A stretch of 64,000 nucleotides of DNA from Botryllus schlosseri (GCA_051294905.1 CM119379.1:15624001-15688000), one strand, 5' to 3'; counted from the first letter of the stretch, positions 24,683 to 64,000 are shown. The notes: a model not told the origin generated them from the sequence alone. Numbers and translations: made by a program.

Positions 24683-25257
24683 GCTGAAGAGATTCGGCGT
24701 CCTAAACATAGAAGATATGCGGAAACTAGAAATCGCCAAGTTTACGTATCAGTTTCACTGCGGTCGTTGCCCCAAATATTTCAATGACTTCTTTACCTCT
24801 GAATCAAAAGCGCACAAGTACAACACACGCGCGTCCACGCCGTCCAAATATCATATGATCGACCGAAAAGATCATCGCTCTATCAAATATGCCGGACCTG
24901 ATGTGTGGAACAGTATCCCGCCAGCCATTCCGCAGTCGACGAGCATGTCCACATTCAAGTCGAAATACAAGCAATTACTACTAAATAAATACAGCCCATC
25001 CTCAAGATTACCGGACCACGACTGACCTATCGATCACGCTTCCCATGACATGCCGCCCTATTTCTTGTCGCTTCCTTTTTCTATACTATCTTTCTTACTT
25101 TCATTCAGTGTGCATGCCTCCTCTTTACATCGCCTAGGCCAAGGTGGGTGTCTGATTCCATAGACAACCTAGTCGCTTCGACATCTTCCTTTCTTTTCAT
25201 TGTATCGCATTTTTTGTGGTGTATTGAACTGATAAAATTGCTAATAAACCAATGATG
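24683..25257 (+). mobile_element. CR1/L2-group LINE, 3' end (ORF2 C-terminus plus 3'UTR)
   Basis: HKYNTR...SIKYAGPDVWNSIP...STFKSKYKQLLL is a typical CR1/L2 ORF2 end, followed by a 3'UTR shared with other copies, AATAAA and an ATG-repeat tail. Confidence 0.85.
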
Positions 25258-43291: not shown

Positions 43292-44553
43292 CCATTTGGT
43301 TTTGCGTCACCAAGTGTCACAGCTGCATTCTTCGCGCTAGCTAGTACAAAAATTGAATAATATTGTTTTAATTCGTTATAATCGTCGACGGATACACAAA
43401 GCGTAAATACACACTGGTTGGAATATTGACATTTTGAATAAACTAGTGGTGGGGCCCGTTTGTTGTGCCTGAGCAAACGTTTGGCAACGCTGCGTTAGAT
43501 AGGCTCTTTCAAATAACATAATTATATCCATAAACCGGTAATAGCGATCACGGATGGACGCAACAAAAGCATGTACGAATTATACCTTGCGGTATATGTA
43601 AAACATGTGCTGTGTCACGGCTAATCTATCACTAGTTCAATGACGTGTAAAAATTGCCGAAATATGTTCAAATTTGGTCAGTTAGGAGGGCTATTTATAA
43701 TCTCAACTACAATAATTATGCTACAAAAATGGTTTTACGCAACTGTCGTATTAGTAATTACACACCTCATCCGGGTAAGCGCGGTGTCTTACAAAAAGCC
43801 TAGAAGAGGGCCGTGCTACAAGTCGGCAGTTACGGAATACGGAAATGAAGAATATGGGCCTGGTGTAAATGACCATAGTAGTCGACAAACACCATGAACA
43901 CCACAACACACAAACACACCTATATGGAATCATACTGTAACATAAATCATCAATTTTTCGAAAATTTCACGGGAAATTTAATTCATAATTCAAATCTTTC
44001 ATGCACTCTTTTTTGATGGATACTTGTATCACCTCGGTGATGGTGCTCTTAGTCTGAACGCAGACAGAGCTAGACGTATATATAATATATATTCCTTACA
44101 TATTGGATATATGTAACGACTTACGATAATGTTTAAAATAAAAATGAATACAAAGCGGATGTTCTAAACATTGTCTTTGTTTAAACTAGAAGCTATAGGT
44201 TTTAATGGGAGGGTTTGTATGTTTATTTACTTAATTAAACAGGGTTGAGATAGCCAGTTTTAAAACACTCCCTATTGAAACAAAGCCGTATATATTTAAC
44301 GTATATCAGGATTGTTAAACACAAGTCCAGGGGCTCTCAAACTTTTTTGATCGCGTACCCCTTCAAGTTTTGTCAGCGATTGCGCATACCCCTAAATTTT
44401 CAGAAGTCGATGACTGGATTTTTCTTTCACATACCCCCTAAAACTAGTGCGCAGGCCCATAAGGGGTCCGTGGACCCCAGTGTAAGAACCCCTGTCCTAG
44501 CCTGTGCACCCAGTTTCTACATTAATGCATTCATGCATAGGTTTATCATTGCC

Positions 44554-47500
44554 CTAAAGTGTAACAGTGGTTTCTTCTTCCTGGTGGATGTAGAGGTGAA
44601 AGTCTTCATTTTCAATTTCAAGAAACTTCTTTTTCTTTAAGCTTTGAAACACGAATTTCTTCGTCAAAATGGGAATCTGATGTGAAGGAAACATATATCT
44701 GCTGTATGAATAATGCCTTGATATGCTTATACTTTTACAATTTGATGTACCTGCACTTGCATCGCTTGTTTCACGAGATACGTGACTTTTTTGAAGTCTT
44801 TTTTAGCACAGATGAGATAGGTATCCGGAAAAGTTTTCTGAACGTACCAACGCGGCTGGGGATCATAAGGACAAGCGGGAACGTCGTAGTCTAGAAAGAG
44901 ACAGCCGTACTTCACATTCATCCAGAAAATATTAAAGATTGAATGGTAAGCAGATGCATCATAAGAAGGGTTGCCCTCTTGTTACCAACCTTATGGCGTC
45001 AGAAGTTCACAGAAAAAAATAATAAACTTCGGATTTGTATTACTAGAACAAAGAGGTGGAAAAAGGTGTAATTGTAAAATTTTTGAGTGTCAGTACAAAA
45101 ACGACTTTACTTTATAATTGTGCTCAAATATATAAAGTCAACAACTATGCTGTCAACCCGTGGTGCCAGGCCAATTGCATAATCCGTTTATATAATTACC
45201 GATTGCGCCTCCACACCGTACAATGACATCTGCTATACTTTCCCGTTTCCATCCTACTTTTTTGCATCTCAGTCTTTCTGACAATACAAAAGTCTTTCCT
45301 TCGAAAACCCTAAAATGCATATTTCATTTAAAAGAGCAAGATTCGCAACCGAACTCTTTGGTTCAGTCGATATTATATCCACGTACCTACTGGTACCAAA
45401 CACTATTACAGTCTTTTTCGTAATCTTTGAAAGCTGCAAGGAAAGAATTGGGAAAGTCATTGAATGGTGATGATGCTTATATTGCCTTTCACTGCGATAT
45501 CACTCCAGTAGTCAAAATTGGCAAATCGCCTGCCCCTACTATTAAATGTACAGACACTAAATGGTGACTAATATATTTAAAACTCAACGACTTAGTTCCG
45601 TCTAGAACAGTGGTTCCCAACCTTTTCCGACTCATCGCTCCCTTATCAATCTCGACACAAATTTTCGCCCCCCATATTCACGGATCCGAAAAATAGGACA
45701 TAGATAGACGGGAAATTCATTCATCTACTTCTGATCGCTGGTGAATTTATTAAAAAAGGATCATTTTTCCGAGGTGGTAGGTGCTTGGAAAACCGGTTTC
45801 CACGTCTACTTTCCGTTGAATTGACTTTTTTTTCGCTTCATATGCAGAATAGCCTTCTTCTCGTGCATTTTTTGGCCGTGTTAATGAAATATATCTCATT
45901 AGACGTTCTAACATTTTCGCCCCCATGGCCCCTAAGTCAGCCCCTTTGGTATTTTCGCCCCCTTGTGTCTCAAATTCGCCCACTGCATGGGGAGCGATAT
46001 CGCCCACGTTGGGCACCACTGGTCTAGAACAAGCGAGATGGGAATGAGAAAATATAAGTGAGGCAAGATAACTTGGACAATTAAAGTTCAGAGGTGGTCA
46101 GTAACGACTTATTCATACTTTTCAGGGTATAGCTACACAAGTAGTTTTGTCCACTTGCGCTAATTACTTGTGATATGGTGACATGTTACGACTACTTTCA
46201 CATCTACTTCAACAGTTTTGGTCTTTTGGAAGTCAAACTACTTACTTTTTTCGTGTTAGATGTTGTCATGTAGAAAGTAGTGTCTTGATAGGTTTATATA
46301 AGCTTTATAAGAGAAATTACCGAACAATTGTTCGATAGGATGCTTGAGAACAGATTGTAGAATAAGCTCATGGAATGTCGTTGACCGCACCATCTATATA
46401 TGGTAATCGTTGCGATGCTTGTATTGATACATCATAAAGCAGACTGTAAAAACGTAAAGACCAACTTTTTCCACTTCTCTCAGTTTATTTTTAAGTCGCC
46501 AGTCCATGTTAGGCTGCTGTTGCTGATTGGGGAAGACACCCCTCGCCGTTGGCATTCCTGTTTCCAGGGTTGATTGAATCGCGTAGATTCTGCCGATATC
46601 ACTCTGACTGAAATGGAATGTATCAACTGCCGTAAATATCGATCAGTACTCAATCAGTGCTCTGGTATTCCAGCATTATTAGCAACGGAATAATGCCACA
46701 ACTTTTTATTTCATATCATAATTAGTCATTTCCCGCTGATTATGGAACAGTTTTTTTTTGTTTGGGAAGATTTTTTCATGCAACTTTCTGTTTCAAGAAG
46801 CTCTGAGTTCGAAAATTTTAATATTTTTCCGTATCTTAGATACGTTTCAATATATCATGGCACATATTTATTCTGAAAAATACGTAGTTCCAGAGGTGTT
46901 TGGGTAAAGTAATTTAGATGAACTATTGAAATCAAATATTACTACCTAAGATATTGCTGCAGGCGGTCTGCCTTGAAGTCAGCTTTCGTATGATATGTTG
47001 CTTTTCAATTTTTGTGAAGATAAAATTGCGCTAGATTTGTTTGAAATTAATGTTAAGCAAATGTTACGAAATGTGTTTTCTACCAACAGGGTTACCAGAT
47101 TTTGGAATCGGGAAAGGAGGCACTTTTTCAAAATTTTCAGATTCAGAATTGTGGAATAAAATTCGGAAAAAATGGAAAATATTTGCCGACTTTGTGGCTG
47201 GTTGACTAAAAAAAGTCGTTACTTTCGTTCTAACCACGAATTTTCTATTTATAGTCATTTATGCCCATTTCTTAGCTCTGAAAGCTGTAAAGGAGGACGA
47301 ATTCTCAGAAAGGAGGACATTTAGGCGTCCCCGGAGGACATTTTCAAAAACCTGAAAAAATAGGACAAATCATCCTAAAGGAGGACGTGTGGTAACCCTA
47401 ACCAGCGAATCATCCACAAACAGAGCAAAACAAATCTGTCGAATTTCGCATTGTCTATTACTAAGTGCGCCTTCTATATAGAAAAAAATACGTTAAATCA

Positions 47501-50500
47501 ATTTTACAATGATAAGTAATCACACTAAAACTCTGATATTCGATATATCTACTGGTGTATTGGATTCTTGAACGGAGAAATAAATAGTTTGCTTGTAGGT
47601 TTTGCCGTATTAGCCGAGGCCTGCTATTTTGATGCCGATTGCAACGACATTACAGCGTATATGAGTTAAATGAGCTTTGGAATTACTTCAGTTCTTCATA
47701 TCTATGTATGGGAGACCTGAACCTATAGCTCAACAATGAAGACACAATAACTAAATGAGATCTGCGCTATTCATTATGTAGAGCAGTTTAACCCGAACCC
47801 CATTCCCCACCCTCCCACCACAGAGGGTTAATAATATCGAAAATGGCGGAGAAATAATGGAAAAAACTTTTTGACTTAAAAACTGACAAATGTTTACATG
47901 AAAAAACATATTTTGAGTAAATCTGGACCTACGAAGAATTTCAGTAGTTACATCAAGCATTATGGTGGAAATGATTAAATTTGTTGTGGTACAACAAAAA
48001 ATACTTCCCTACATTCTCGGGTAGAAAGTGTCTGTCCTTGCCAAGTAGCTTGCCAAGAATGGAGAAAGAATGTTCAACAGCAGCAGTTGTTGGCTGGCAA
48101 CACTGAAGTTGTGTGTAGGCCTACTACACTGCTGGTGACACACTGTGTTGCTTCATTCTGACCATGCTGTCTACTTCACCATTTTTATCATGCGCTTCTT
48201 GACATAAGAACCACTGCCCTGCACGCAGTCTTGCTTCAGTTAGAATATTGCGGTGCGTTGAGCATAACACCAAGTCAACATATTTGTTTCATTTGACCGT
48301 TTATGATTCACAATTAGCAGACAATGGGCCGTTTACAACGGCAGGCCTATACAATAGGCTAAGCTGTAAAATGTTAAATGATAAGTTCACCGACAGTGCA
48401 AACAACTACGATACAGACGAAATGCAGGTTGCAAATTTTTTTTTGACTTTGTAAACAATTTTGACAATTTTTTGACATAACGCTGCAATTTTGACTTATT
48501 TTGACATGTCGAATAAAATCACCCTAGTGATAACACGTTTATGATTTCGCCAAACCCATATTGTATACTTACTTTTGCAACAGTCGTGCAGAATCCAAAC
48601 TTGAGATCCAGGTGGCTGCATTTTCATGCAGTAGTTTTGTTTCTGCTGATTGGTCCACCATCAATGTGCAATAGGATCGTTTGATTTTATTTATTTCGAT
48701 AATTGCTCCTTTAATGATCGCTTTATGCTCATTTGGTAAATCATCACCATCCTGTCTATAACCGAGACATGAACGCATACTCACAATGGAAACCATCAGC
48801 AATTACATATAACAGTTCTAGATAGGCCTATGTAGGCCACTTCGTATTTGGTATTAGGCTCACCTTACGCACAATCCTACATCATCAAGCGCCTTCACTC
48901 CGATTTGTCTATACTTTCCTTCAGCAATCATTAGGATTGCAGTTGCGACTTCAGTAGGAGATCGTAGGACCGACCCATTATCGACACAGTAGGGGGTCTG
49001 CTCTATCATGGGCTCACCTGGTCAACATATTCGTCCACATTAATACTAACTCGGTCCGTGTATGGGTGGGTAATCTAAATGCCTATCGTATCGTTGATAC
49101 TCTAAGACAGGGGTTCTTAACCTTTTTAGAGCACGACCCACATCTGAGGTTTATTGGCATCCCTGTAATGACTCGAGTCACGATTTTCTGATGACTCGAC
49201 TTGACTCGAGTCATCTTCTCAAAATGAGGAAATGACTCGACTCGACTTGGACTCGAGTCATTGCGCATGCCTCGAGCCAAGTCATATGACTCGAGACTCA
49301 GACGGCCGAAACCGACATTTGATTGTGATTCAGAAGAATAGTAAAGTAACCACCATATTGGGACTTCGTCTATTGGTACTGGTACTTGGAAAAAGCGACT
49401 AGAAACTGTTAAAAGTGAGAAAAATTAATATATTATAAACGCGAACCATTCGATATCACAAAACAAAGTTATAAAAGTAGGCTTAACAAGACTTTAATGG
49501 GAAATTGAACAGTCAACACAATGACTTGGACTTGGACTCGAGTCATATTACCATGACTCGGATTCGAACCTCTGCTCGATGACTTGGACTCGGACTTGAC
49601 TCGGTGGTAATTGAAAATGACTCGACTTGACTCGAGTCAAAACTATAATAGTGAGATTGACTCTGTAATGGCACCTTGCCACCCAAGCCTCGACTGAATG
49701 AATGCATTTTAATGTTAGTATGATACGGTTCTATGGGTATGCATGAAATAGAGAAGGGGCAGACAACCAGTTGTACGCCACGCAGTTCTATGAAACATGT
49801 GCGAGCACTGAGAAGTACGCAATTACAAATTGGGTTGCAGTTTTCCGTTGCTGTTTTCCGCGTGTCTCGGTTATTGGCTATTTTACCCAACGCAACAACA
49901 CTGTGACATTTGATATGCACCGGACCGTAACCGTACTTCGTCAGCCACCCCCCCCCCCCAAAAAAAAAATGTTGGTCTTGGTCTCCCGAGGATGATAAAC
50001 CGGACTTCTGTCCCCCAGACCCCATCAGGCTATACGCTGTTAGCCGTAACTTAGCATCTATACTTCGTGTCCGTTTAGTCAGTGAGTGAGCTTGTGTCGC
50101 CTAAACGCGTGAATCGCGAAAAAATTTATATAATTCGTGATTGAGTCGGTCAATATGATCGAGAATTGCATATATATTGCTATCAATTTTTATCCTCACT
50201 CTGCTCACGTGATCAGATTTATCGGTAGAGCTGAGTGAGGTGTGTTGGAAAAGATAGGACCCGTAAATAATAATTAAACATCTTCGGGCGTACCCGTTGG
50301 TATAATGACTTCGTTACATGATGCTGTTTCGTGTTTCTGCTATGTCTGCTATGTCTTGGTGCGCCCGAGCGCGGTAATGACTGACGCCAAAGTGCCGATT
50401 TCTAAAAACCATGCGTATTTTTTGTTGGTGGAAGGGTACCACCCAATAATAAAGATATTCGACAACATAAAATCGCGCACAGAGCGAAAAACTTTTTGAA

Positions 50501-53500
50501 AAACTTGCATAAATTCCAAAAAAAATACTCTATGATTTATGTTAATTCACGAAATAATTTTGACCCCCTTTCAAGCTCGGGGGGGGGGGGGGTTGGGGTG
50601 TGGCAATTTCGGTCCTGGATATGCACAAACCATCCACAGAAGATCGCGCCAAGCGTGAAAACAATATTTTTTGCAAGGAATTCAACAAATATTACTTACA
50701 TATTAGAAAATCGCTCTGGTGCGGTCCCGACCCAAATTCGTATACTTCGCGAACCATGTTTTGGTCCCAACCCATACTTAAGAACCCATCTTCTAAGAAT
50801 TACAAATTCATCACCCCAATTGGAACCGCAGATTTCACCGCAATATTTAGAATTGTAGACAGAAGATGCATCGCGCAGCCAACATATCGATCGAATGATG
50901 TCTTCTCAACATGTATACATGGACACTTGGAAAGTGGACACTTAGACAAGTAGTTATACTAACAAGAGAATAGTAAAGCGAGCCAGTGGCTTTGTGCCGT
51001 GTTTTATAATAGCGCAACATCGGATTAATTATGAAAAATAAATAGAGATGAAATTCAAGTCATTGTAAAGTTATGTAGGCTCATATTCATCTTGTAAAGC
51101 ATGAATAATTGAATATAAATAGCTACATGTCGATGTATATGGCGAGTTTCCTTGATGAATGTTGCCGTTTATTAAACGCCGCGTATGTCTTGGCTGAATG
51201 ATTCCACTGTCGAACCCGAGTCAAAGCGTTACATCACAGTGTCCCATATGGTGTGGACACAAGAAAATCTCACGGCTCAGTGCCATTGGTCTACGTAACA
51301 CTTTCCCATTGGCTAAAGGCAATTTGACAGAAATTTTGACCGGCTGCCGAGCAATAAATTTGATAAAATGGGGATCAGTCGAAAGCATCCGATGTACTGA
51401 TTGCGAAAATATAAATTTCATTCTGCTCGTGGTCCTGGAACCCCCAAAAATCAGCCCCGAATGTTGCATTGTAACGGAGTTTGGTATCGTGACGCAACCA
51501 TGCCGTCTGAGCAGCTCAGGAGCAAGTGCGCACGAGAGTGAGAGTATATGAATGCTCAATAGGTTGTGCATGTGAAACAATGGCCAATACGTTTGGGGTT
51601 TGCGCTGCTCCTCGCCTGCTCTCAGACGGCATGGTTGCGTCACAATACCAAACTCCGTTACAATGCAACATTCGAGGCTGATTTCGGGAGGTTCCAGGAC
51701 CAAGAGAAGAATAAAAGTTATATTTTCGCAATCAGCACCGCGGTAGCTTTCCATTGATACCAGTTTTTCAAATTTCGCGCTAGGCAAGCCGGTCAAAAAT
51801 TACAGTCAAATCGGCTTTAGCCAAATGGAAAGTGTGAAGTAGACTAATCACAGTGAGCCAGGAGATTTGCTTGTGTCCACACCGTACAGGATACTATATG
51901 GTTACATGCTTGAAATTGAAACGAGTATAGATATATGATTGTTTTTACGACACGTTCGAGTACCTCTGAAACTAACATATATGGATCTAATCATAGGCGC
52001 CGAGTTACGGGGTGGCGAGGTGGCGCAGCCACCCCATACAATAAGATTAAACGCCCGCCGTCGTCGATTTCGAATCATCAACGCTGTCAATTAGCGAGTC
52101 CGTGATAGCGCGTAAATGCAACTATTTACCATTAACTGTTACGCGCGCGAATAATTGAATACGCAGCTTTGTTGGCGACGACGAACGAGTGCTTAAAACG
52201 CCCCAATAAATTGTAATCCGTGATTAGTAATCAGACAATCGAAGCAACCTCGTTTACGACGTCAATTTCGACACGCTTGCGCTGACAAACACCATCTTCT
52301 CTCTCGACCAGGCGAGCGAATTCACGTTCTCCTTCTCTTAATTAAATTGTATTTGCGCTCATATTCGTTTACAAAATAATTCTTGAGTTAGTTCCGTGAT
52401 AGTCTGTTCAATTAGAGGCTTGGAGCGCGAAATAGGACTGTGTGTTTGTGTATGCCTGCGAATTGAAAGTCATTCCTGCGCAAAGTGAGCACATTCATTA
52501 CTGTACTCTAACAAGTCTTTGTCAACTTTTATCGGAAATGCAACAACGCAGCTGAAACGACGTTATAATGAGCAAACAATTGTCGCGATGTCAGACTTGG
52601 AACCCCATTGTGCTGTACGCAAGTTGAGGAATTACTGATTAGATGCGTGCTTTCGTTCGCTATCATCTGTAGGCTACTACGATAATTCTTGTCTGCTTTA
52701 TACACTCATATTCCCTCGATGTCACTTGTCAGTGGTTGATTTGTTATTAATACTGCACATTGTGCAGTGCACGGCGTTGAATTACGTTGTCAAAAAATGA
52801 TGCAACACGAGATTCTCGGTGGCGCAAATTCTGAATTTATTCGATTAGGTTGAACGGGAACCTTTTATGTTCAATAAACTTCATTGCAGTACGGACTCTA
52901 TCGAGCGCAACCATATCGCGGATCGAATTTCAAATCTTTGGAAAATGTATTTCTATTGATAAGGTCGCGGCATGCGCACTGCAATAACACTTGGATAATG
53001 AAAAATGCACCATTATACGATCAAATTCGACTTGCTGATCGGGACCTACGTAGGCCGTAGGCCCCAGGATGATATTAACTAGTGCGTTGTCGGCATAAAA
53101 ACCTCAGGTGCTTAGCCAGGGAGTTTCTCATTTATATCTAGAAATCCCGTCGATTTGAAATGCCAATTCACTAATTCGTATTGTCGATGCTGCGTACTGC
53201 AAATTGGCGAGGATCATTTGTATGCGAAATGGGTCATCGATATCTCCTGTGCACTGTCGTCAGTGGTTTGATTTAGCGCGTCCGCATGCAAGCCTGCTAC
53301 CGTCCGCAGAAACACATTCCACTAACAGTAACAATCTTTGAGTGTAATATTGTTTGTGTTTATATATCTTTTTTGATGAAAACTTATGCGCGCGTCTGAA
53401 CAAATTGTGCTCGTTGCCATTTGCCGAATCTGGGTATTTATGTATGACTAGCGCACCCTGTAATTGTAATTATTGCTGGTTTGCGGCATGTCTGCCATTT

Positions 53501-56500
53501 CGTTATCAGCGCAACTTTGCAGGCCGATTGTACAGTCCGATAAAATTGTCCACAACTATGTATTTCGCACAGCATACTGATGCTGATTTCAGCAAACTAA
53601 CGATCCTTATTAGATGTACAAATACGACCTCATCATTAGATACTTAGATTTCATCGCGCGCTCTGAGAAACACCATCTCCTATCGCGATTTGACGACCAA
53701 ATATACGTCCAGTCCACCTTCTACAAATTAAAGTGCATTATTTGCATCGATGAGAGCCGCAAGCCGGGTTTAAAATATTTTATTTTGTGAACCATTTTTG
53801 TGATAAATATTCTCGGAGTTGAACAGTGTTTTGTTGTGTGTGCCTGCTAGTTGAAATTTATTCCAGTGCCCATAATATTAATCCAATTATGCTTTGCGAA
53901 CGTAAATCGGGAAATGCAGCAATGCTGTCAAAATCGATGTTTTCATCAGCTACCAATTGTCGCGATGCGAGCTACTCAATACCAAGTAAAAACCCATTGT
54001 GTTGGCGGTAACGGATATTACTGATTGGCCGCGCGCGTTCGTAATCATAATCTTGTCTGTCTTTCGTTTTCCAGAATTGTCGCGATGTGTTACTGCTCAG
54101 TTCAGCAACGAATGCCTAATGCGCGGCAATCAATGACCTAATTTCGCAACATCTCAGCGGGAGATCGCGTTGCATTGTGCGATGCGATATGCGTACACAG
54201 ACGAGTCTCGCTAATTGGTCGCGGCCCGCGTAGCACTGATAGTACGACTTGTTGAATTGCAACTGAATATTAGCGTCAGAATGGTCGTTTCAAAAGGACG
54301 GGGTTTTGCGTTTCAGAAGGAGGGGGTTTCGACACCCCCTGGCTACGCGCCTGCCGCCACCCCATGCAAAAATAAAAGTCGGGGCCTATATGGATCTAAT
54401 CCCAACACCATATGCTACAATTCTTGTACTAGAATTACCTGATGCGCCAATTTCATTTCCACCAAATTGTGAGAACAAGACGACGTTATCAGTAAAGCTG
54501 CGATTAGACCCCTCATGATCAATATACGTAACATCTACTTCCAATATTGTCTTGCCCAAAGATTCCTGAAAATTGGGGGCGTTATGTTTGTAATTTATCA
54601 ATTCGACCGAACGGACTCACGTCAAATTTCTCAGCATCCAAGAGTATTTGCATTGGAATATGTTTAGCAACCATATCAGGAATGCTATGGATGAAGTATG
54701 TCAAAGACGTCGACCCGGAATCCTAAAAAATATCAGCCTCGACATTTTAGCGTCAACAGCATTTTAAGCGGCTATTGAACGGTTACCTGCAGATGGGTCC
54801 GGGAAACACTATCTTCGTTGAAAGTAGTCCCTTCAAGACTCCGTATCTCAATCCTAATGTCTGTGATGTGTGTCTCGTCCCTATAATATCATCGAATGAG
54901 CCAAGCAAAGACATTGTCACCATGCCGATGCCGCAGAAAGGGCAAGTGGCGGTCTTCTTTCTCTTATATTTTGAACTTTCATCAATGTGACGTCATTGTC
55001 GTTGGTGTGGTCATAGGTTTGAAACTTGTAGCAAATTATAGTTCGTGGTAAAGAAGGCCCACAATGGCGATACGCATCACTATAATATACAACCAGATGT
55101 GGTCAAAGCTGTCAAGAAAGCTACTCAAGTAGAAGTAGAAGTAGCGGCGCAAAATCTACTACAGCACGACTAGAAGTAGTGCCTTTAAAAGTAACCTAAA
55201 ACTACTTCAAGCAGAAGTATGATTGGCTTGCTTTAAATCTATTCAAGAAAGTAAACTGTGGTGGAAAGCAGTCATAGATGCACTCTCAAGGAATTTCGAA
55301 AACTGGAATCTGAGAGGAAGGTGCATAGAGCAGGAAAGAGGACATTTAGGCATCCTCTGAGGACACTTTCAAAAAAGTCAAAAAAGAGGACAAATCCTCT
55401 TAAAAGAGGACGTATGGTAACCCTAATTAAACCCACTAAGGACTAAGCCATCGTATCGCACGAAATGGTGCCGTAAATCACATAGTGACATAAAATTTCA
55501 GAAGAATTCCTAAATAATGAGGATGACAATATTGGAAGACTATATATTCAAATTATACGCATTGTACCTAGAAAGGATGCATTTGTACAGTGTCAACGGC
55601 CAATGACTGATACAGCTTACGTTTGTATTGATATTATTCAACGGTACGACAGGTCACACATGAAAGTAAAGATGCGAGCTATTGTTCCATAGAAAAATAT
55701 GACTGAATCTGCGGCCATTGACTGATACAGTGATACAGCTTACGTTTGTATTGATATTATTCAACGGTTCGACAGGTTACGCGTGAAAGTAAAGATTCGA
55801 GCTATTGTTCCAAAGAAAATATGACTGAATGCTGAATCTGCTCCTGATGTGTCAGGTACTGGGATATTTGACAGTACAAACATTTGTGAGTCTAATGTAG
55901 CATTGTTGCCCGTAGAAAGTAATTTTTAGCGATGGGAACGCTGGCATAATGTAAACGTGTTGCAGATGCAAGTCTGCAAGCGTCAAAATTCTTGACAAGG
56001 CTGTTTATTTCCATCCAAACAGGGTGGGATACCATAACTTACCGAAACTGCGGCCGTCTGTGCCGTAGGTTCGTAGTTAGGTAATTGGCCTGGTACAATT
56101 GAAAATTGGTATCATGCTCATATTCAGCATATAGAGTTGCAACACCATAACCGTGTATATTTATTGTTCTCAACCAAAAAACGGAAATACATGCGGAAAT
56201 CGTGAAATTGCTTGTAACTATAGCCAGAATTTTTCCATGGCGTGACTCGAGTAAGATTCGAATTAAATTTTTGAGTGACTTTACTTCATTCGAGTCAATA
56301 CTCTAAAACTGATTTGACCTGACTCGGAGTCGGCGTAAATGAGAAATATAAAATGGCTCGTGAGACAGAGTCAAATTTTCGAGTCTGAAAAGGGACTGCG
56401 TCATCCAATACCAGTGGTAGTCAGTAACGAAGTACTTCCAAGTTTTGAAGTACTCGAGTAGGTTTTTGTCTACTTTTACTCCTTACTCAAGTGCTACTGA

Positions 56501-59500
56501 TTTTAGAGAACTCCACAGTTCACAGTAAGTGCTTCAACTTGAGAGGAGATTTTCGTCATTATTTCTATACTTCATACTTTTAAAATCCTAATTGGAAAAG
56601 GTACGTAGGTCTGCCTCAAATCTCTTCAAGCAGAATCAGAAGTAGTGTAAAAACATTACCACATGAGTACGAAACGAAAGTAGGGAGAGCCTACTTTGAG
56701 TGTTCTGGAAAAGTAGAAGTAGAATATGTCATTACTGACCAGTGACCACCACTATATTTATGTGCATGTATTGTATAGGCCTAATCAATAAACATATATA
56801 TATACACAAATTATTTAACAGACTCCTCAAAATCTGCCTGTTTATTCATCATTTACCGCAACAGTACGGGCATCAGCATATCCGCTTCGAACTCATGACT
56901 ACGGTTCAGCCAATAGAATGCTTCATTGCCCAGGTTGGCCGCCAGCTAAATAACGAAAAGTAGAGAGAGATCAATATTGGGGGCTGAAAATATTGATCAA
57001 AAAACAACTTCAATAGAACAATTAAATAATAAATACTGACATGTAACATTTTCGAATTCGGCTTATTAGCAATTTTTTATCAGTTCAATACACCACAAAA
57101 ATGCGATACAATGAAAAGATAGGAAGGTGTCGAAGCGACTTGGAGTAGTCTTTGGAATCAGACACCCACTTTGGCCTAGGCGATGTAAAGAGGAGGCATG
57201 CACACTGAATGAAAAGTAAAAGAAGAAAGTATAATAAAAAGCAAGCGACAAAAAATGGGGCGGCAAGTTGTCGCATCGTAGCCATGTAATTTACAAAAGC
57301 AAATCCCGATATCACAAAACGTTTCTTGCATTGGCGTTTCAAGGATAAATCTTATGAATCATATGCACTAACAGTGTCTAGGACTGCCTTTAAAACAAAT
57401 ATGTATTAATTGGAACATGTTTAAAACGTAATCCCTTAAAAGATGCTCTTATTGACCCCACGATTTTTCAACTGTGACGTCACCGTGGACTAACATTGTT
57501 ATATGTTTCCATAATAAGTACAATTGAATAATAATTACAGTAATAAATACAATTGAAAATATAGGGTCAATAATATGGCTCCTTTGACGAAAAACGTTTC
57601 CGTGCCGTCTTGCACCGACCAATAAATATCTTTGACCTGGACTACTTCGTCATGCAGTAATTTTACGGTCGGCGTATCATCATAATATATCTATACCATT
57701 AGAGTGATATATAACTATAGTAACTACGTACTATAACTGTTTAAGTGTTTTAAAATATCACTTATTTTAAATGCAACCCTAGCAGTCACTCCCAAAACGG
57801 GTCCTGCGTTCCTTTTAGAACCCACGAATAGTTTGGGAGCACAAATCACCTTGAAAAAAGCCCTGAACTTTGAGACCCAAAATTCGACGTTGTACACCAG
57901 GACCACACAAATGGTGGACCGCGGTCCGAATTCGAACCTTTTCCATGTTGAATGCGGACCTTATCTGTTTCAGTAGGCTATATACACCAAAGAAGGTTTG
58001 GTCAACAGTAGGATACCCAAAATAATTTCCGTGCTCTTTTCAAATTAGTGGTGCAAATTATCATAGGGCCATACAACTATATACATATAGGGTCAACTAT
58101 ACGGCCAACTTCAATTCAAATCACATTTACCTCTTTTAGCAGATAAGGGTCGTCCTCGCCTATGGTGAAAGCCGACAAGGGCGTCATTTTTGCAAAGTCT
58201 TTTTGAGCTTCACGGTAATTTTGTACCAGTACTGCTGGATCGGTTTCTCCTTCATTTGCAACTCCGTCGGTAAATACAATTATAATATCTCTTGAGTTGG
58301 TCATGGTATTTCTTGGAGTGAAAAAACGGGTTTACGTGAATGATGCGCTAGTGAGAAGTCACGTGACAGTGAACAGAAATAAATGTATATATCGGTCGAT
58401 GTTAAATATCTGTAATAACATAAGTATACATTATAATGTAAAAATATACGTACGTTTGAAGAACATTCAGAGCTTCCAAGAGACCTATTTCGATGTTCGT
58501 GTAGCCTCTGGTTTCTATTTGTTCAACAACTTTTTCGACGTGTTTCTTTACATAAACATTAAACATGATGTGATTACAATTACGAAAATGCGGTAGTGCA
58601 CACGCACATAATAGTATCTACAACCGCCTTATATCTTCATTACTTTTTATCGTGTATCGCAGGGGTTCTCAACTTCCCTCGTATAACGGGCCGCATTTTC
58701 ACACTGAAAGACGCTGCGGGCCGCAGAACATTATCACCATGTATTTGTGGGCTACTATTGAATTTAGGCCTATTGATCAGTATTATTCGGGCATTTAGTA
58801 CATTTTTATGCATTCTAAAGCATTAATGGAGAGCGTTCGTAAGTTTGCAGTTGCTGGTTTTTTGTGAGAACAACGATCTTCATGGAGCGTACATTCCATT
58901 CGTTGCCATGTCGGTATAGTATATGCACCCTTCAAACCCTTCCATCATCAGAGAACCGAACTCTCTGTTTCAATGCGTGAGCGAGCAAGTATAAAATTAC
59001 GGTGACTTTTTCGGTACTGAGGTAGGCTTACCATACGTCCTCTTTTAAGAGGATTTGTCCTCTTTTTTGACTTATTTGAAAGTGTCCTCGGAGGACGCCC
59101 TTTTGTCCTCTTTTCTGAGATTTTGTCCTCTTTTTTGAAAATTCAGGTCAGATTTAGAGGAAATTGCGAGTGATATGCCGCAAATTAGCGCAGAAGTGAA
59201 GCTCCGGCGGGTATTTCGGAGGGAAAAGTGGTGATTTCAGCTCTGAGCGAAAAGAAGACCTTTTTTTTTTTTTTTTCAGTCATCCACCTAGCAATGTGGA
59301 GTGAAAAACGTGTTTTTGAGCTCTGAGCGGAAGTGATGACCTTTTTTTTAGTCAACCGATCATGAAGCGGGTGAAATTTACCTGTTTTTGAGAATTCTTC
59401 TCCAGTTTTGCTTGTCTGAAATTTCTGAAAAAGTGTCCTCTTTTTTCATTTCCGAAATATGGTAAGCCTAACTGAGGTCATTATCACTTTGAGCTCTCAG

Positions 59501-61189
59501 TTAAATGAGAAGAATTGAGACGTTAGGGGTAATTTCTGAGCAAATCAATCAACCCTTCTCCTTTCCTTCCATTGCTGGAGCCCTACACTAATAGTTACAG
59601 AAGTCAGCTTTGTCAAATTGATGTCCTGGTCCCCTTCCCACGTTTGTCCTGTCAGCATTTCCTCTGAAAATATGCCCATGCCCACTCTGATATAAAGCAC
59701 CTGGAAAATTAGCTATGCAATGTGTGTGCAGTAGTGCACTGTGCACTGTGTGCATCGATGGATAGGTCCAATGCCAGGCTAAAGTAGTCTACGTGGCAAC
59801 GTGTTACAGAACATGCGATAAAAGATCGACTGATATCGCTGTTACTCTTCTGGTGACTGTTGAATCAGACAACTGTAGCTTCGAAATTTGTCAGGTGATG
59901 TATGACTTGCTGCTAAGTTCCGGAAACAGCGAATATTTACTCAGTAGCCTACGTTAAAGTTTTATTGAAGTCATGCCTTCTCTAGCAGATTCTTGGGTTT
60001 AGCGATATTCCAAGCAATTTTGAACAATGCGCCTGTCACGTCGTCGGCAATTTTAAAAATGATTCGAAATATGGATTGCTGGACTTGAAACCAAGCTAGC
60101 AACGTTTGATATGTATAACTCCAGATGAAACTATCGTGCTATCATTTCAAGCTTCTGGGCTTTGTTATAACAACTGTTCTTCGACAAATGTGACACATCG
60201 GTCTTCCATAACAATACGGGACCAGTAGTGATTATATTGAAAGACGTCGCGGGCCGCAAAAGAATCGTCTGCGGGCCGCATGCGGCCCGCGGGCCGCGGG
60301 TTGAGAACCCCTGGGTATCGCATTGTGCATTATGCATTATTCTGTAGACAGAATAATGATAAATGATGATAAAAATACTGGTATCGTTGGTAAATGCGAC
60401 GTCAAAATCAAATGCATTATAGTTACGTCCTTATAATTATATTACCAATGCAAGCTTTTTTCCACATTAGGAATCAGAGTAAAGGCAACTTCAGCGTATG
60501 GGCTGTAAAGTTACGTTATGATACAGCAACAACAACAACCAACCAACCAACCAACCAACCCCACCTTCCCTTTCTTGTCCATTGACATCAAGGGCACGTC
60601 CAGTTGAACATCACTTGCAAAAGTTACGATAGCAAGAGAGTCCTTTTCAGAAATATGATTGGTGACAAGTTTCGCAAATACCTGAAATAGGGACATAATA
60701 TGTGCCTTATGGCTACTACAGGGATATCTAGAACTTCTAGATATCCATGGGCCACTATACTCGACGACCGCACATCAGATGCGTAACCAGGTTGAAAATC
60801 AGGGAAATATGAAAATAATAGAGGAAGCGAACATGAAAATGACATATGGGGTTGTAGATCCAGTGCTAAAACAAAATAGGCCTATACAATGTACTATAGT
60901 CGAAGATTGATTAGTAAAAACAGGCTAAACAGGCGCATTCAGCTGTCTGACTACGTCAGGAGTATAGTCACGGGATAATGTTTTAGTTCAGAAAATATTG
61001 ATTTTCTTACTGCACACCTGTCGTCTTCAGACAATATACCTTAACTCGGTCAAGCAATGTTTCTGTTTCCTCTTCCACAACTCGTAGATCCATGCTACCA
61101 CTGACATCAATGACCAGAACAAATCGTGTCGGGATTAAAGTGGTATTTCGGAACTTTTTCGCGGACATCTCCATGACAACATCAACGGT
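44554..61189 (-). CDS. Uncharacterised vWA-domain protein with C-terminal BRCT domain (at least 15 exons, at least 616 aa; 5' end unresolved)
   Basis: Phase-compatible exons: 61040-61189, 60565-60681, 58454-58545, 58131-58311, 56857-56945, 54787-54880, 54621-54722, 54439-54565, 48864-49017, 48573-48755, 46466-46607, 45387-45433, 45200-45309, 44751-44890, 44554-44676 (1851 nt including stop). vWA MIDAS residues: FVLVIDVSGSM, GYTNIEIGL, IIIVFTDG. BRCT pattern: VFEGKTFVLS...IADVIVRCGGAI...TYLICA...QAMQVQIPILTKKFVFQSL. The 49017 acceptor and the 46466 donor are the weakest junctions. Confidence 0.8.
45608..46021. mobile_element. hAT-type (Charlie/Buster-like) MITE
   Basis: TIR CAGTGGTTCCCAAC/GTTGGGCACCACTG, perfect TSD GTCTAGAA. 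Confidence 0.88.
49920..50617. mobile_element. About 700-bp hAT-type MITE with internal dimeric structure; further copies at 29345-30019, about 26019-26650 and about 15020-16102
   Basis: Termini C(A/C)GG(A/G)CCGT(A/G)AC...GTTACGGTCCTG-like, perfect TSD GATATGCA at this copy. ACAGCACTTCGTCAGCCCCCC occurs twice in the 29345 and 26019 copies. Confidence 0.85.
51235..51900. mobile_element. Foldback palindromic element, about 660 bp; a single arm of the same family at about 40330-40568
   Basis: Inverted arms at about 51237-51510 and 51610-51896. GTTACAT flanks both ends. Confidence 0.75.
55597..55835. repeat. Two-copy tandem duplication, about 115-122-bp unit
   Basis: GATACAGCTTACGTTTGTATTGATATTATTCAACGGT...GAGCTATTGTTCCA...AAATATGACTGAAT is repeated with few substitutions. 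Confidence 0.85.
57060..57300 (-). mobile_element. CR1/L2-group LINE 3'UTR copy; shorter fragments of the family at about 225-455(-), 1376-1535(+), 5385-5550(+) and 28145-28297(-)
   Basis: Shares the block CCTAGGCCAA(A/G)GTGGGTGTCTGATTCCA...TCGACACCTTCCT...GTATTGAACTGATAAAAATTGCTAATAA. Confidence 0.8.
58660..60313. mobile_element. hAT-type element bounded by CAGGGGTTCTCAAC TIRs, with a nested MITE and unique filler
   Basis: Matching TIRs and near-duplicated flanks (TGTATCGC/GGTATCGC). No vWA-BRCT exon is needed from inside it. Confidence 0.6.
59023..59470. mobile_element. MITE with TAGG(G/C)TTACCA termini and GTCCTC/GAGGAC repeats; other copies at about 40597-41905, 47087-47400 and 55320-55425
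   Basis: Termini TAGGCTTACCATA/TATGGTAAGCCTA, flanking duplication ACTGAGG(T). It is nested in the 58660-60313 element. Confidence 0.8.
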
Positions 61190-62433
61190 CTGAATGGAAA
61201 ACACTTATGATTACAGCATAAAGGTATTATTTCTAAACTAGGTCCCCACATTTTCAGCAACACTGACGACTGTATTACCTCCCCATTTTCGAACAGAATC
61301 CCTTCCCACGTATTTGGGGTTTATCTAGGCTCCTTCCCGCCATCTGACTCTCATATAAGCGGTGTCTTAAAAATCCTAGAAGTGGGGTCAGTATCAGTAG
61401 ATACGGAATCAAAAAAGAGTATCGGCCCGGAGTAAATTGCTGACCAGTGACCAGTCGAACAAGAATACAACACCATGAAAACCAGAAATAGCCACAACCC
61501 CACTTTTCGTGCCATGCTTGTAAAAGTCAGTGTACCTAATGCACTAATTCAACTTTATCAAACATCATAAGGCTGTCACGCATTGCCGCCACGAAATTTT
61601 CTTCATTCAATCGATGAAAGGTTGTATTTACTCGTGGGATTATTTCTGCCGCCGTGCGTTTGCTGATTTCTGCTCTAATTCAGGTGGTTCTCAAACTGAG
61701 TGGTGCGCCCCACTCGGGAGGCGTGAAGGCATCTGAAGGGGCGCGAAGCCGCCCGAGAGAAATGAAGTTTCTTGAACTCGGAATGAGTTTAATTTATAAT
61801 GAAAATTCCAAGATTCAACAATGACAATAATCCTAATTATATCATTATATTAATTATATTCAATGTATATAGTTCCATCGTACCATCCAAACACCGATGC
61901 TGAAGGATTGTGACTGATACTATAGAACTTGAACCGATCAGAAGTTGTCTCTGCATCAGGAGTAACTGAAGAATTCGTGTGGGGTAGATGTTATATCGGA
62001 TGCTTTTATGGTCTGTGTGTCAAGCATCTGTGCAGAGTGCACAGAAAGACTTAAAGTTATGGAGACGTAAGATATTTCCTTGTAAGGTCATGTCATATGG
62101 GATCTAAGAAGCAAGGAGTTGAATCGTAGAGGCTTAAAACGTCGAATTATAGCGATTACCAGTAGCCTATATACTGAATCATGACACCGATCGAATTATT
62201 ATCTTGCCGAAGACCTGAGAAAAATTGTTTGTCCCATGCAGAAATGCCAATTTTGAACTAAGCCTACTGTCCGCGCCTTTGATTTAGCTTATGGTCATGT
62301 ACGTTTGAGCCAAGCCCAAGCCATGACATCGAAGGTATTATAGACACCCTAATCGCTAAAATATATATATGCTACGTGCTACCATTGCACCAATTATTCA
62401 ACTGAAATTTTGTTCGTGCTCCGCGAGATTTAC

Positions 62434-62623
62434 CTCCGGCTCTTAATTACTGCTCTGTGTATAGTCCGAATTTCATATTTCAGAGTTGTTTCAACAGTCA
62501 TAACCTTATGTGCCCTCAAACTATGCGTTGGGATTGGACACTTTCTGGTTGCTCTTTTTAATATTTCTTTGATTTTACGATAAAGGGGTGCAAAAATTTT
62601 CACTATCATCGAGAGGGGCATGT
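62434..62623 (-). CDS. Probable upstream exon of the vWA-BRCT gene
   Basis: Open frame (DMPLSMIVKIFAPLYRKIKEILK...LKYEIRTIHRAVIKSR) between a good acceptor (TTTTCAG) and donor (AG|GTAAAT). It ends in phase 2 while the next exon starts in phase 0, so it needs an alternative donor (GCA|GTAATT) or an unseen micro-exon. Confidence 0.45.
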
Positions 62624-64000
62624 CTGAAAAAGTCTGAGAATCATTGGTCTAAAACAATATACAACGACATTGATGTCATTACCTGACAGTTGACCACATT
62701 GCAGTGGTATTTTCGTTTCAAAATATCCCGCTGTTTCATTCTGCTCCTGCTAATCACTATAATTTCACTGATAAGGCACTCTAATGTTATGGCAATCTAC
62801 CCGGTATATGTCCCTCGAATGACAGACGCCGATCACACTTGGTTGCTACGACAAAGTCAACAAAGTAGTAGAACTTAAAAAGAATTATAGGATTCAATTT
62901 CAGCGAGAATGAAGAAGTGAAAATGATACTTCAATATTGGTATGGTTCACAAAGTAAACATATGTCAGATCGGGAAACACAATCAATCATACGTTCGATA
63001 GTACACAAAAAAGTATCCGATTTCACCAAGATGCAACTAATATCTGCGTAATCATTATGTAGAATATGTACCGCACACTGCTGTACATCAGATGACAATA
63101 AATGTACTTGTAACGACCTTTTTAAAGTATCCAAATCTATATATCCATAACAGTTGCGCAAATTTTCAAAAAGTCGCGATTTTGTTCGATGAAATTGATG
63201 ATTCATGTCTACAAATCAGTATAGTTAGGTTTGAAGCTGGTTCCCCCGTTGTTTTATTTTCCCTTAATACACAAGGAAATCATCATTCATCATAATCAAT
63301 CATCATTTATTTGAGATTAGGCACTGTCGTTAGTATTTTATTATGATCTCATCTACATACCCTTCAGTTATTATTTACACATAGGATTATGAATAGGCTA
63401 AGTAAGCTTAAACCACTTCCACGGCCCATTTTGCATTTATTGTTTGTTTTAAAGACCCTACCGGGGCATTGGGTCGAATTGAGTCTTGTGTTTCCTGGCA
63501 TTTGTCCATTACATATCAATTAAGTGGGATCTGTCACAAAATTACATCTATCGCCAAATGATTGGATCTCAAAAATATTGGAAACTATTGTCGGAAGCCT
63601 GATATTATTCGACGGGAAATAGCACTGAAAAATTCCAGTTTCAAAATCGTAAATTCGAGGCTAACGTACATGAATGAGTCACAAGAATCCATCGTATAAT
63701 TGAAGTTCCGTTCTATCTGCGAAACAAGCATAAATCAATTTCTGTATTTTGCGTGTTTGATCAGCGTGTACTCAGCTGAGTACACGCTGGTTTGATGCGG
63801 CGAGATAGCGCAGTGGTATAATAACACTGTGCTGCGTTTGCAAACTAGTTTTCAAAGGTAAAAGATGTTTTAACTGTTTTTGGATCAGTGTTTCGCGCTG
63901 AACTAAAAAATGCAACCAATTTTTCTCAATTAGGTCAAGTTTTTTCTCCACGGCATATTCAATTATGCTAGCTTTTGGTCATTATTCTACCTACACAAAG

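Follow-up and report, generated by a model that had tools for sequence, protein, structure and literature searches.

The stretch of Botryllus schlosseri DNA analysed here, 64,000 nucleotides of assembly GCA_051294905.1 (CM119379.1:15624001-15688000, that is C9:15624001-15688000 in the 495-Mb genome; hereafter the window, with positions counted from its first letter), very probably contains, on its minus strand, a single intact protein-coding gene in which a domain of the von Willebrand factor A (vWA) type is truly fused to a BRCT domain. In the final model, the gene runs from 62739 to 44554 in 16 coding exons and encodes a protein of 632 amino acids (aa), in which a short basic linker joins an N-terminal module with the vWA domain to a single C-terminal BRCT domain. 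The gene is a member of an uncharacterised multi-copy family of invertebrate chordates, whose proteins are present in databases only as "uncharacterized protein". A literature search for vWA+BRCT in amphioxus or Ciona, or for "VWA-BRCT", found no paper describing the family, in keeping with a first-pass annotation of this DNA that had not recognised the fusion as a described one.

Scans for open reading frames (ORFs) and for stop-to-stop segments over 43-64 kb yielded short open minus-strand segments carrying the motifs listed in that annotation, and tblastn alignments with full-length homologues served to reconstruct the exons, whose borders were then refined by eye. With two Styela clava proteins, P0005 (618 aa) and P0007 (654 aa), as queries, the tblastn matches on the minus strand of the window followed one another in strict colinearity between 61.2 kb and 44.55 kb. 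The 15 exons that had been proposed to chain in frame over 61189-44554 could be recovered with canonical borders (an AG acceptor and a GT donor each), agreeing phases and no internal stop, and the frame closes at a TAG at 44556-44554. This chain amounts to 613 aa, slightly below the "at least 616 aa" claimed for it; an added upstream exon with the initiator methionine, at 62739-62683, raises the length to 632 aa. The Met exon was the best match of a hidden Markov model (HMM) built from the N-termini of homologues (E 0.005), and its KYHCNV aligns to the conserved K-Y-[YF]-C-Q-V strand of the family; the K-Y-x-C-Q-V motif itself, searched for up to 10 kb past the window, occurred only in the plus-strand first exon of a divergent neighbour. 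The outer limit of 62623 set earlier coincides with no supported exon and was abandoned, together with an ORF at 62430-62621 for which there was no homology support. Aligned end to end, the 632-aa protein is 35-42% identical to four Styela clava vWA+BRCT proteins and to P0019, a protein from a Logan contig; an 88%-identical exon fragment (P0001) is present on a further Logan contig. The exons, with the evidence for each, are as follows.

62683 to 62739, minus strand: exon 1, start codon and 19 aa (MKQRD...KYHCNVVNCQ), with donor CAG|GTAATG; found by the N-terminal HMM (E 0.005), its strand confidently modelled in the homologue P0032.
61040 to 61189, minus strand: exon 2, vWA strand beta1 with the DVSGS motif; tblastn with P0007, P0005, P0011 and P0016, splice sites and a Pfam VWA_CoxE fragment.
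60565 to 60681, minus strand: exon 3, vWA alpha1/beta2 (SLAIVTF); Pfam fragment, tblastn, splice sites.
58454 to 58545, minus strand: exon 4, the metal-site Thr (GYTN) of the vWA domain; tblastn, splice sites, conservation.
58131 to 58311, minus strand: exon 5, vWA beta4 with the metal-site Asp (FTDG); Pfam VWA and vWA_Ro60 fragments, phmmer; the query with which the family was found.
56857 to 56945, minus strand: exon 6, end of the vWA domain (GNEAFYWLN...ADMLMP); 63-67% identity to Styela homologues, splice sites.
54787 to 54880, minus strand: exon 7, start of the beta-sandwich; tblastn, splice sites, strands in the homologue model.
54621 to 54722, minus strand: exon 8, beta-sandwich (YFIHSIP); tblastn, splice sites.
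54439 to 54565, minus strand: exon 9, beta-sandwich (ILEVDVTYID); tblastn, splice sites.
48869 to 49017, minus strand: exon 10, last part of the beta-sandwich and the bundle's first helix, after a 5.4-kb repeat-rich intron; tblastn with P0013, splice sites.
48573 to 48751, minus strand: exon 11, helical bundle; tblastn with P0005 and P0016, splice sites.
46466 to 46607, minus strand: exon 12, family signature GRIYAIQSTLETGMPTARGVF, in a Vwaint-like position; tblastn, splice sites, and a motif kept in tunicate, amphioxus and annelid members.
45387 to 45433, minus strand: exon 13, short linker (..VIVFGTS); the exon with the weakest homology support, placed by the phase requirement and the match of FGTS to P0007 and P0032.
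45200 to 45309, minus strand: exon 14, BRCT beta1-alpha1-beta2 (VFEGKTFVLSERL...RCGG); Pfam BRCT positions 3-41 (E 0.006), 60% identity to P0007, BRCT profile.
44751 to 44890, minus strand: exon 15, Pro/Tyr-rich insert followed by BRCT beta3 and alpha2; tblastn, splice sites, BRCT profile; the insert is a low-confidence loop in the BRCT model.
44554 to 44676, minus strand: exon 16, BRCT beta4-alpha3 (IPILTKKFVFQSL), then an acidic tail and the stop codon TAG; match to positions 42-84 of Pfam BRCT_2 (E 0.03), tblastn, splice sites, BRCT profile.

The same exons could be divided between two neighbouring genes that were wrongly chained, a vWA gene at 62.7-54.4 kb and a small BRCT gene at 45.4-44.5 kb. 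The long repeat-rich intron between exons 9 and 10, the lack of an RNA joint, and the weak donor of exon 12 (AAA|GTTGGT) are compatible with such a division, which is nevertheless very improbable: exons 10-13, located in the gap separating the blocks, correspond to the central part of those same full-length proteins, the phases fit at all 15 junctions, no start codon or alternative upstream exon is required, and the order is shared by at least 10 predicted proteins from three genera of chordates and by a spliced mRNA-like contig. The colinearity of the exons with full-length homologues, and the presence of the same architecture in Styela, Ciona, Branchiostoma and paralogues within the Botryllus genome itself, place the vWA and BRCT exons in one gene, as had been proposed.

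When ten single open segments were compared with Pfam, the matches were below threshold but colinear, successive vWA exons corresponding to successive parts of VWA-type models; these single-exon fragments were used as evidence of colinearity only. Exons 2-5, in which the vWA fragments are colinear, are 47-53% identical to the vWA domains of homologues, and the homologues themselves match the Pfam profiles (VWA, PF00092, or VWA_2, PF13519) with 33-72 bits, above the gathering scores. The full metal ion-dependent adhesion site (MIDAS) reported in the first-pass annotation is present, with DVSGS at residues 47-51, GYTN at 122-125 (T124) and the TDG of FTDG at 153-155 (D154) in the 632-aa numbering. 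The DxSxS, Thr and Asp are kept in all members, whether of tunicates, amphioxus or annelids, whose sequence reaches those columns, and the site is predicted to bind metal. Only about 20-40 residues, modelled as beta-strands, precede the vWA domain, and the 632-aa protein, with a predicted pI of 5.6, contains no signal peptide and no membrane or hydrophobic segment.

A structural view of the module was obtained with AlphaFold2 (AF2) from an alignment of nine sequences and Styela P0032, which among the homologues resembles the window protein most. Residues 20-525 of the model are confident (predicted template modelling score, pTM, 0.71) and comprise strands at 21-43, the vWA domain at 54-247, a beta-sandwich at 248-375 and a helical bundle that extends over 377-528. 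On the basis of this model, the N-terminal module of about 500 residues would consist of a vWA domain with a complete MIDAS, enclosed by a beta-sandwich to which both the two N-terminal strands and the post-vWA sheet contribute, and of the helical bundle that follows. The bundle closes with a signature, [GW]-R-[IM]-x-A-[IM]-x-S-S...P-T-A-x-G-[VI]-F, and the GR.Y...TARG motif singled out in the earlier annotation lies at the expected place, as GRIYA...MPTARG at 451-469 (632-aa numbering). Across the aligned members the signature takes the form ...[AS]-[IM]-x-S-S-...-P-T-x-x-G-[VI]-F and is kept in the same way as the MIDAS residues.

The C-terminal domain is identified as BRCT by sequence and by fold. 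The spliced C-terminus (aa 507-618, three exons) matches a BRCT profile built from amphioxus proteins only with 47.9 bits (E 1e-13), and none of 2000 shuffles of the same residues was reported by that profile, which, together with the colinear fragments, excludes a chance match. In seven homologues Pfam BRCT_2 (PF16589; the related BRCT model is PF00533) is found with 29-45 bits, at a cut-off of 27.3. The BRCT part of the full-length AF2 model was unusable (predicted local distance difference test, pLDDT, 25-40). Folded alone with seven sequences, the BRCT domain of P0007 (residues 540-654) gave a pLDDT of 83.6 and the canonical order of strands and helices, only the Pro/Tyr insert being disordered. 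The top 50 fold matches of this model in the PDB are BRCT domains without exception (Chs5, PTIP, Crb2, TopBP1, REV1, MDC1, PARP4, XRCC1 and BRCA1 among them), and a profile search of PDB sequences returned Mdb1 (2e-5), Chs5 and the BRCT domains of PARP4 and PARP1. Profile, homologue model and fold matches thus agree with the single C-terminal BRCT fold first proposed, and its three atypical traits are located as stated: LSERL sits in the beta1-alpha1 loop, helix alpha3 carries F at the usual W position (KKFVFQSL), and a Pro/Tyr-rich insert separates the GG motif from beta3. The insert, however, is not a private feature of this gene, as it is common to the Styela proteins P0007 and P0032 and to the Logan protein P0019.

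The family was delineated starting from the exon that encodes the TDG motif (58119-58331), which was compared by phmmer with 1.84 billion representative proteins. Only 18 matches were obtained, and the full-length ones were "uncharacterized" proteins of Styela clava. Pfam VWA and BRCT_2 are both above the gathering score in P0005, P0007 and P0032 (Styela) and in P0033, P0130, P0131 and P0134 (Branchiostoma), and in Ciona P0034 the BRCT_2 match (E 3e-5) falls just under it. Overall, the vWA+BRCT architecture recurs in at least five Styela loci, in Ciona LOC100178306 and, with BRCT_2 scores of up to 45 bits, in Branchiostoma, where at least seven proteins show it. Named members are LOC120346390, 346391, 346725, 346726 and 341230 of Styela clava, LOC100178306 of Ciona intestinalis and, in Branchiostoma, for example Hypp1785. 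These homologues retain both domains and share with the window protein its length and its succession of K-Y-[YF]-C-Q-V strand, MIDAS vWA domain, beta-sandwich, helical bundle, ...SS...PT.xG.F signature and C-terminal BRCT domain. The Ciona and amphioxus members align over their full length at lower identity (22-43% by region). Compared with the Styela, Ciona and amphioxus members, the window gene is a distinct paralogue, and the amphioxus BRCT domains differ in keeping a T-x-K motif and in having no Pro/Tyr insert.

Additional support for the fusion comes from a Logan contig of 2968 nt (L004), which contains one uninterrupted vWA+BRCT frame of 657 aa (protein P0019). Its alignment to a Botryllus paralogue at 6.39 Mb of C9, with 70-78% identity, is broken up into blocks of exon size that are distributed over 9 kb, and because of this spacing the contig can be taken as the spliced mRNA of another tunicate that carries both domains. 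Outside the chordates, the annelid proteins P0137 (Owenia fusiformis, E 6e-95) and P0139 (Paralvinella palmiformis, E 2e-78) contain the N-terminal module and the signature, with no detectable BRCT domain; judging from these sequences, either the module predates its fusion to BRCT in chordates or the annelid gene models are truncated. Module and signature are also kept in P0011 (Logan, 787 aa), in which a coiled coil and several membrane segments replace the BRCT domain, and in P0016/P0030 (Styela, about 1490 aa), in which an apparently repetitive tail of about 900 residues without a Pfam match takes its place. No vertebrate matches turned up in the searches made, and the fusion was seen only in tunicates and amphioxus.

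The first-pass annotation had also likened the protein to the vWA/Vwaint family, a kinship that is borne out by layout and fold but not by sequence. The Pfam Vwaint profile (PF14624) gave no match at E<=10 in four family members, and the same scan found Vwaint at 7e-14 in a control, the U-box-vWA-Vwaint-Vint protein P0039. When the family was compared by hhalign with ten U-box-vWA-Vwaint-Vint proteins, only the vWA domain aligned (99.5% probability); the post-vWA parts gave colinear but insignificant matches (<=1.5% probability), which weakly place the G-V-F...Q-P-Y of the family on the G-N-F-K-D...Q-x-Y of Vwaint. Profile matches outside the family likewise covered the vWA domain only, and many were to U-box-vWA-Vwaint-Vint proteins (E 1e-12 to 1e-8), with bacterial vWA proteins scoring equally well or better. 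Fold comparisons were made by Foldseek with the predicted model of the homologue P0032. Solved structures matched in the PDB included 8s05 (the ArnAB complex, an archaeal Sec23/24 core; 2e-18, TM-score by target 0.68), 4fx5, 5a8j, 6fpy, ITIH1, an ArnB paralogue and Sec23/24. Among clusters of the AlphaFold database, two amphioxus proteins came first, followed by RING, receptor-kinase and Hint proteins over approximately residues 1-560. In Swiss-Prot, the matches were sll0103, then WAV3 (1e-16) and EDA40 (3e-16) at ranks 2 and 3, and further YfbK, ITIHs and WAVH1/2; the alignments to WAV3 and EDA40 reach the end of the helical segment (the N-terminal ~530 residues), with a root-mean-square deviation of about 19-22 Å.

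According to Bürglin 2008 (PMC2362128), vWA-Vwaint-Vint proteins have an N-terminal vWA domain, a spacer of about 300 residues with Vwaint and a C-terminal Vint domain, without a signal peptide, and Vint genes were reported to be absent from Metazoa. The Vint and U-box-vWA-Vwaint-Vint proteins of fungi and protists resemble the window protein in being intracellular and in their layout; their vWA domain is homologous, and a Hint protein matches structurally over approximately residues 2-622. They differ in that the window gene has a BRCT domain instead of Hint (Vint), no U-box and no Pfam match to Vwaint. Pfam detected neither a Hint/Vint domain nor a RING or U-box in the homologues, whose C-terminus is BRCT. 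In plants, the part after the RING finger of the WAV3/EDA40/WAVH RING-vWA-Vwaint E3 ligases matches the whole N-terminal module in fold, and so does the module that follows the kinase part of wheat Lr9, a kinase-vWA/Vwaint protein (PMC10260399). In contrast to these proteins, the window gene encodes no RING or kinase, its partner domain is C-terminal rather than N-terminal, and sequence likeness is confined to the vWA domain. The best matches of solved structure, the ArnB and Sec23-Sec24 core, YfbK/sll0103 and ITIH, are 10-14% identical, which denotes kinship at the level of fold only; both there and here strands flanking the vWA domain appear to build a beta-sandwich, whereas the zinc finger and gelsolin domain of Sec23/24 and the VIT domain and secretion signal of ITIH have no counterpart in the window protein.

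It is fold and architecture, as seen in the predicted model, that would connect the family with Vwaint proteins, and a BRCT domain placed where Hint or nothing usually sits is a fair description. Taken further, the family could be a true member of the Pfam vWA/Vwaint group (Vint/WAV3 lineage) that has diverged past sequence detection and in which BRCT replaced Hint or RING. The strong vWA alignment, the many U-box-vWA-Vwaint-Vint proteins among the profile matches, the layout known from Vint proteins and the colinearity of the weak hhalign matches fit such membership, as does the similarity in fold that runs through the helical segment and is shared with WAV3, EDA40, WAVH1/2 and with kinase-vWA and Hint proteins. 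The unmatched Vwaint profile, the insignificant post-vWA alignments and the large deviation from WAV3 and EDA40 speak against it; moreover, sll0103, YfbK, ITIH and ArnB/Sec23 score at least as well as WAV3, so that this class of folds extends beyond the Vwaint family. We regard membership as a considerable possibility that falls somewhat short of probable.

To our knowledge, PARP4, the vault poly(ADP-ribose) polymerase, is the only well-known animal protein with both BRCT and vWA domains. Its order is BRCT-PARP-VIT-vWA; in the window protein the order is reversed (vWA...BRCT) and the PARP and VIT domains are missing. That the gene might encode a diverged protein belonging to one of the characterised vWA families of animals, of the PARP4/vault or the ITIH type, is suggested by the same pairing of domains in PARP4, by the PARP4 BRCT among the sequence and fold matches and by ITIH1 among the fold matches. 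Yet the homologues carry, according to Pfam, neither a PARP catalytic domain nor a VIT or ITI_HC_C domain, the BRCT domain is C-terminal, there is no signal peptide, and the matches to the PARP4 BRCT are weak (E 0.02) and no better than those to other BRCT domains. This origin is exceedingly improbable, and PARP4 had rightly been set aside as a model for the gene.

Elsewhere among eukaryotes, RING, U-box, kinase or Hint domains are found attached to this N-terminal module, and its association with varied C-termini or partners suggests that a conserved module serves for binding, whose output or targeting domains can be exchanged. On the most economical reading, the window protein might work inside the cell as a scaffold: its vWA module would use the MIDAS face to bind an acidic residue of a partner in a metal-dependent manner, and the BRCT domain would dock the complex to a second partner, which could be a phosphoprotein, poly(ADP-ribose) (PAR) or nucleic acid. 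We offer this adaptor or scaffold mechanism tentatively, as possible rather than probable. A broader proposal, somewhat more doubtful still, is that the vWA-BRCT proteins are the animal branch of an ancient intracellular vWA-Vwaint module (the Vint/WAV3 lineage), in which BRCT replaced Hint or RING in the chordate stem, and that the branch expanded in amphioxus and tunicates, was lost in vertebrates and constitutes an undescribed metal-dependent adaptor linking a MIDAS ligand to BRCT-type signalling (phospho, PAR or DNA).

Several observations weigh against the main reading of the locus as one intact gene for a vWA-BRCT scaffold. The domain calls come from exon-wise matches, from homologues and from a local profile. 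In BRCA1-type BRCT domains S-G ... T-x-K forms the phosphate pocket. The loop Ser is invariant in the BRCT domains of the family, with Glu or Asp rather than Gly as the next residue, and the T-x-K motif at the start of alpha2 is T-A-K in amphioxus, T/S-x-L/S in tunicate members and T-Y-L here; lacking both the Gly after the loop Ser and the Lys of T-x-K, the domain is doubtful as a binder of phosphopeptides. Finally, subsamples (6-13%) of four bulk RNA-seq runs from Botryllus schlosseri, mapped on 44100-50099 (exons 10-16), showed no splice joints on the gene and essentially no depth on its exons, and this copy may be silent or narrowly expressed.

The RNA-seq confirmation of the junctions that had been asked of the model was thus not obtained in these runs, and their outcome neither supports expression nor gives evidence against it. 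About 3-4 reads, from run X7 only, fell in the bins holding exons 12-14 and 16. Depth otherwise lay on intronic repeats only (46900-49700), where the reads are 95-99% alike and fit only in part, and odd read joints lay between 49192-49218 and 49618-49639; the reads on these repeats are transcripts of repeat copies from elsewhere and not of the gene. The near absence of reads in four runs, and the existence of at least three other vWA+BRCT copies in the genome, would be expected if the locus were a silent or decaying paralogue, real in its architecture and without a functional protein. This is improbable, as the frame of 632 codons stays open across 16 exons, all of whose splice sites are canonical, the MIDAS and BRCT core residues are kept, and the RNA data cover 6 kb in a small fraction of each of the four runs. 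Since protein identity to the nearest paralogues is only about 40-55%, the duplication must be old; an unconstrained copy would by now carry stops, and the intact frame therefore argues against a dead copy. At the same protein identity synonymous sites are saturated, which makes Ka/Ks (nonsynonymous over synonymous substitution rates) against the neighbours uninformative.

BRCT domains nearly always belong to signalling in DNA damage and replication, and vWA domains with a MIDAS bind proteins in a metal-dependent way. The significance of the finding lies in a conserved multi-copy family that unites the two and has no studied representative, as an animal counterpart of a vWA module that is fused to E3 ligases or immune kinases in plants and to Hint in protists. 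It bears on domain architecture and not on a new mechanism, and with the Ciona homologue LOC100178306 function is directly testable.

The further vWA+BRCT paralogues in the genome, at least three in number, are all on contig C9. Two lie just past the end of the window, at C9:15695400-15707800 and C9:15713800-15725500, both on the plus strand (loci L003, L005-L007), arranged head-to-head and in tandem with the window gene, to which they show the protein identity given above. The first exon of the nearer neighbour (..SKYFCQVTRNQ) is located about 8.7 kb from the Met exon of the window gene, and the two genes may share a divergent promoter region. A compact vWA+BRCT paralogue of 8.6 kb at C9:6391700-6400300 (plus strand, locus L008) is likely the orthologue of Styela LOC120346390 and of contig L004. 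Two vWA-bearing copies on the minus strand, at C9:25029000-25029500 and 25050400-25052250, have no detected BRCT exon.

The window also contains several mobile or repeated elements. A repeat of about 170 bp at 63818-63991 has more than 40 copies on many contigs at 82-92% identity and looks like a short interspersed element (SINE) or a miniature inverted-repeat transposable element (MITE). On the plus strand, a 533-aa frame at 34883-36484 carries reverse-transcriptase motifs (YADDLALL) and is probably a retrotransposon without long terminal repeats (non-LTR). On the minus strand, two adjoining pieces at 12317-13189 resemble a DDE transposase of the Harbinger/PIF type, and an open frame at 24212-24739 resembles the C-terminal part of a retroelement integrase.

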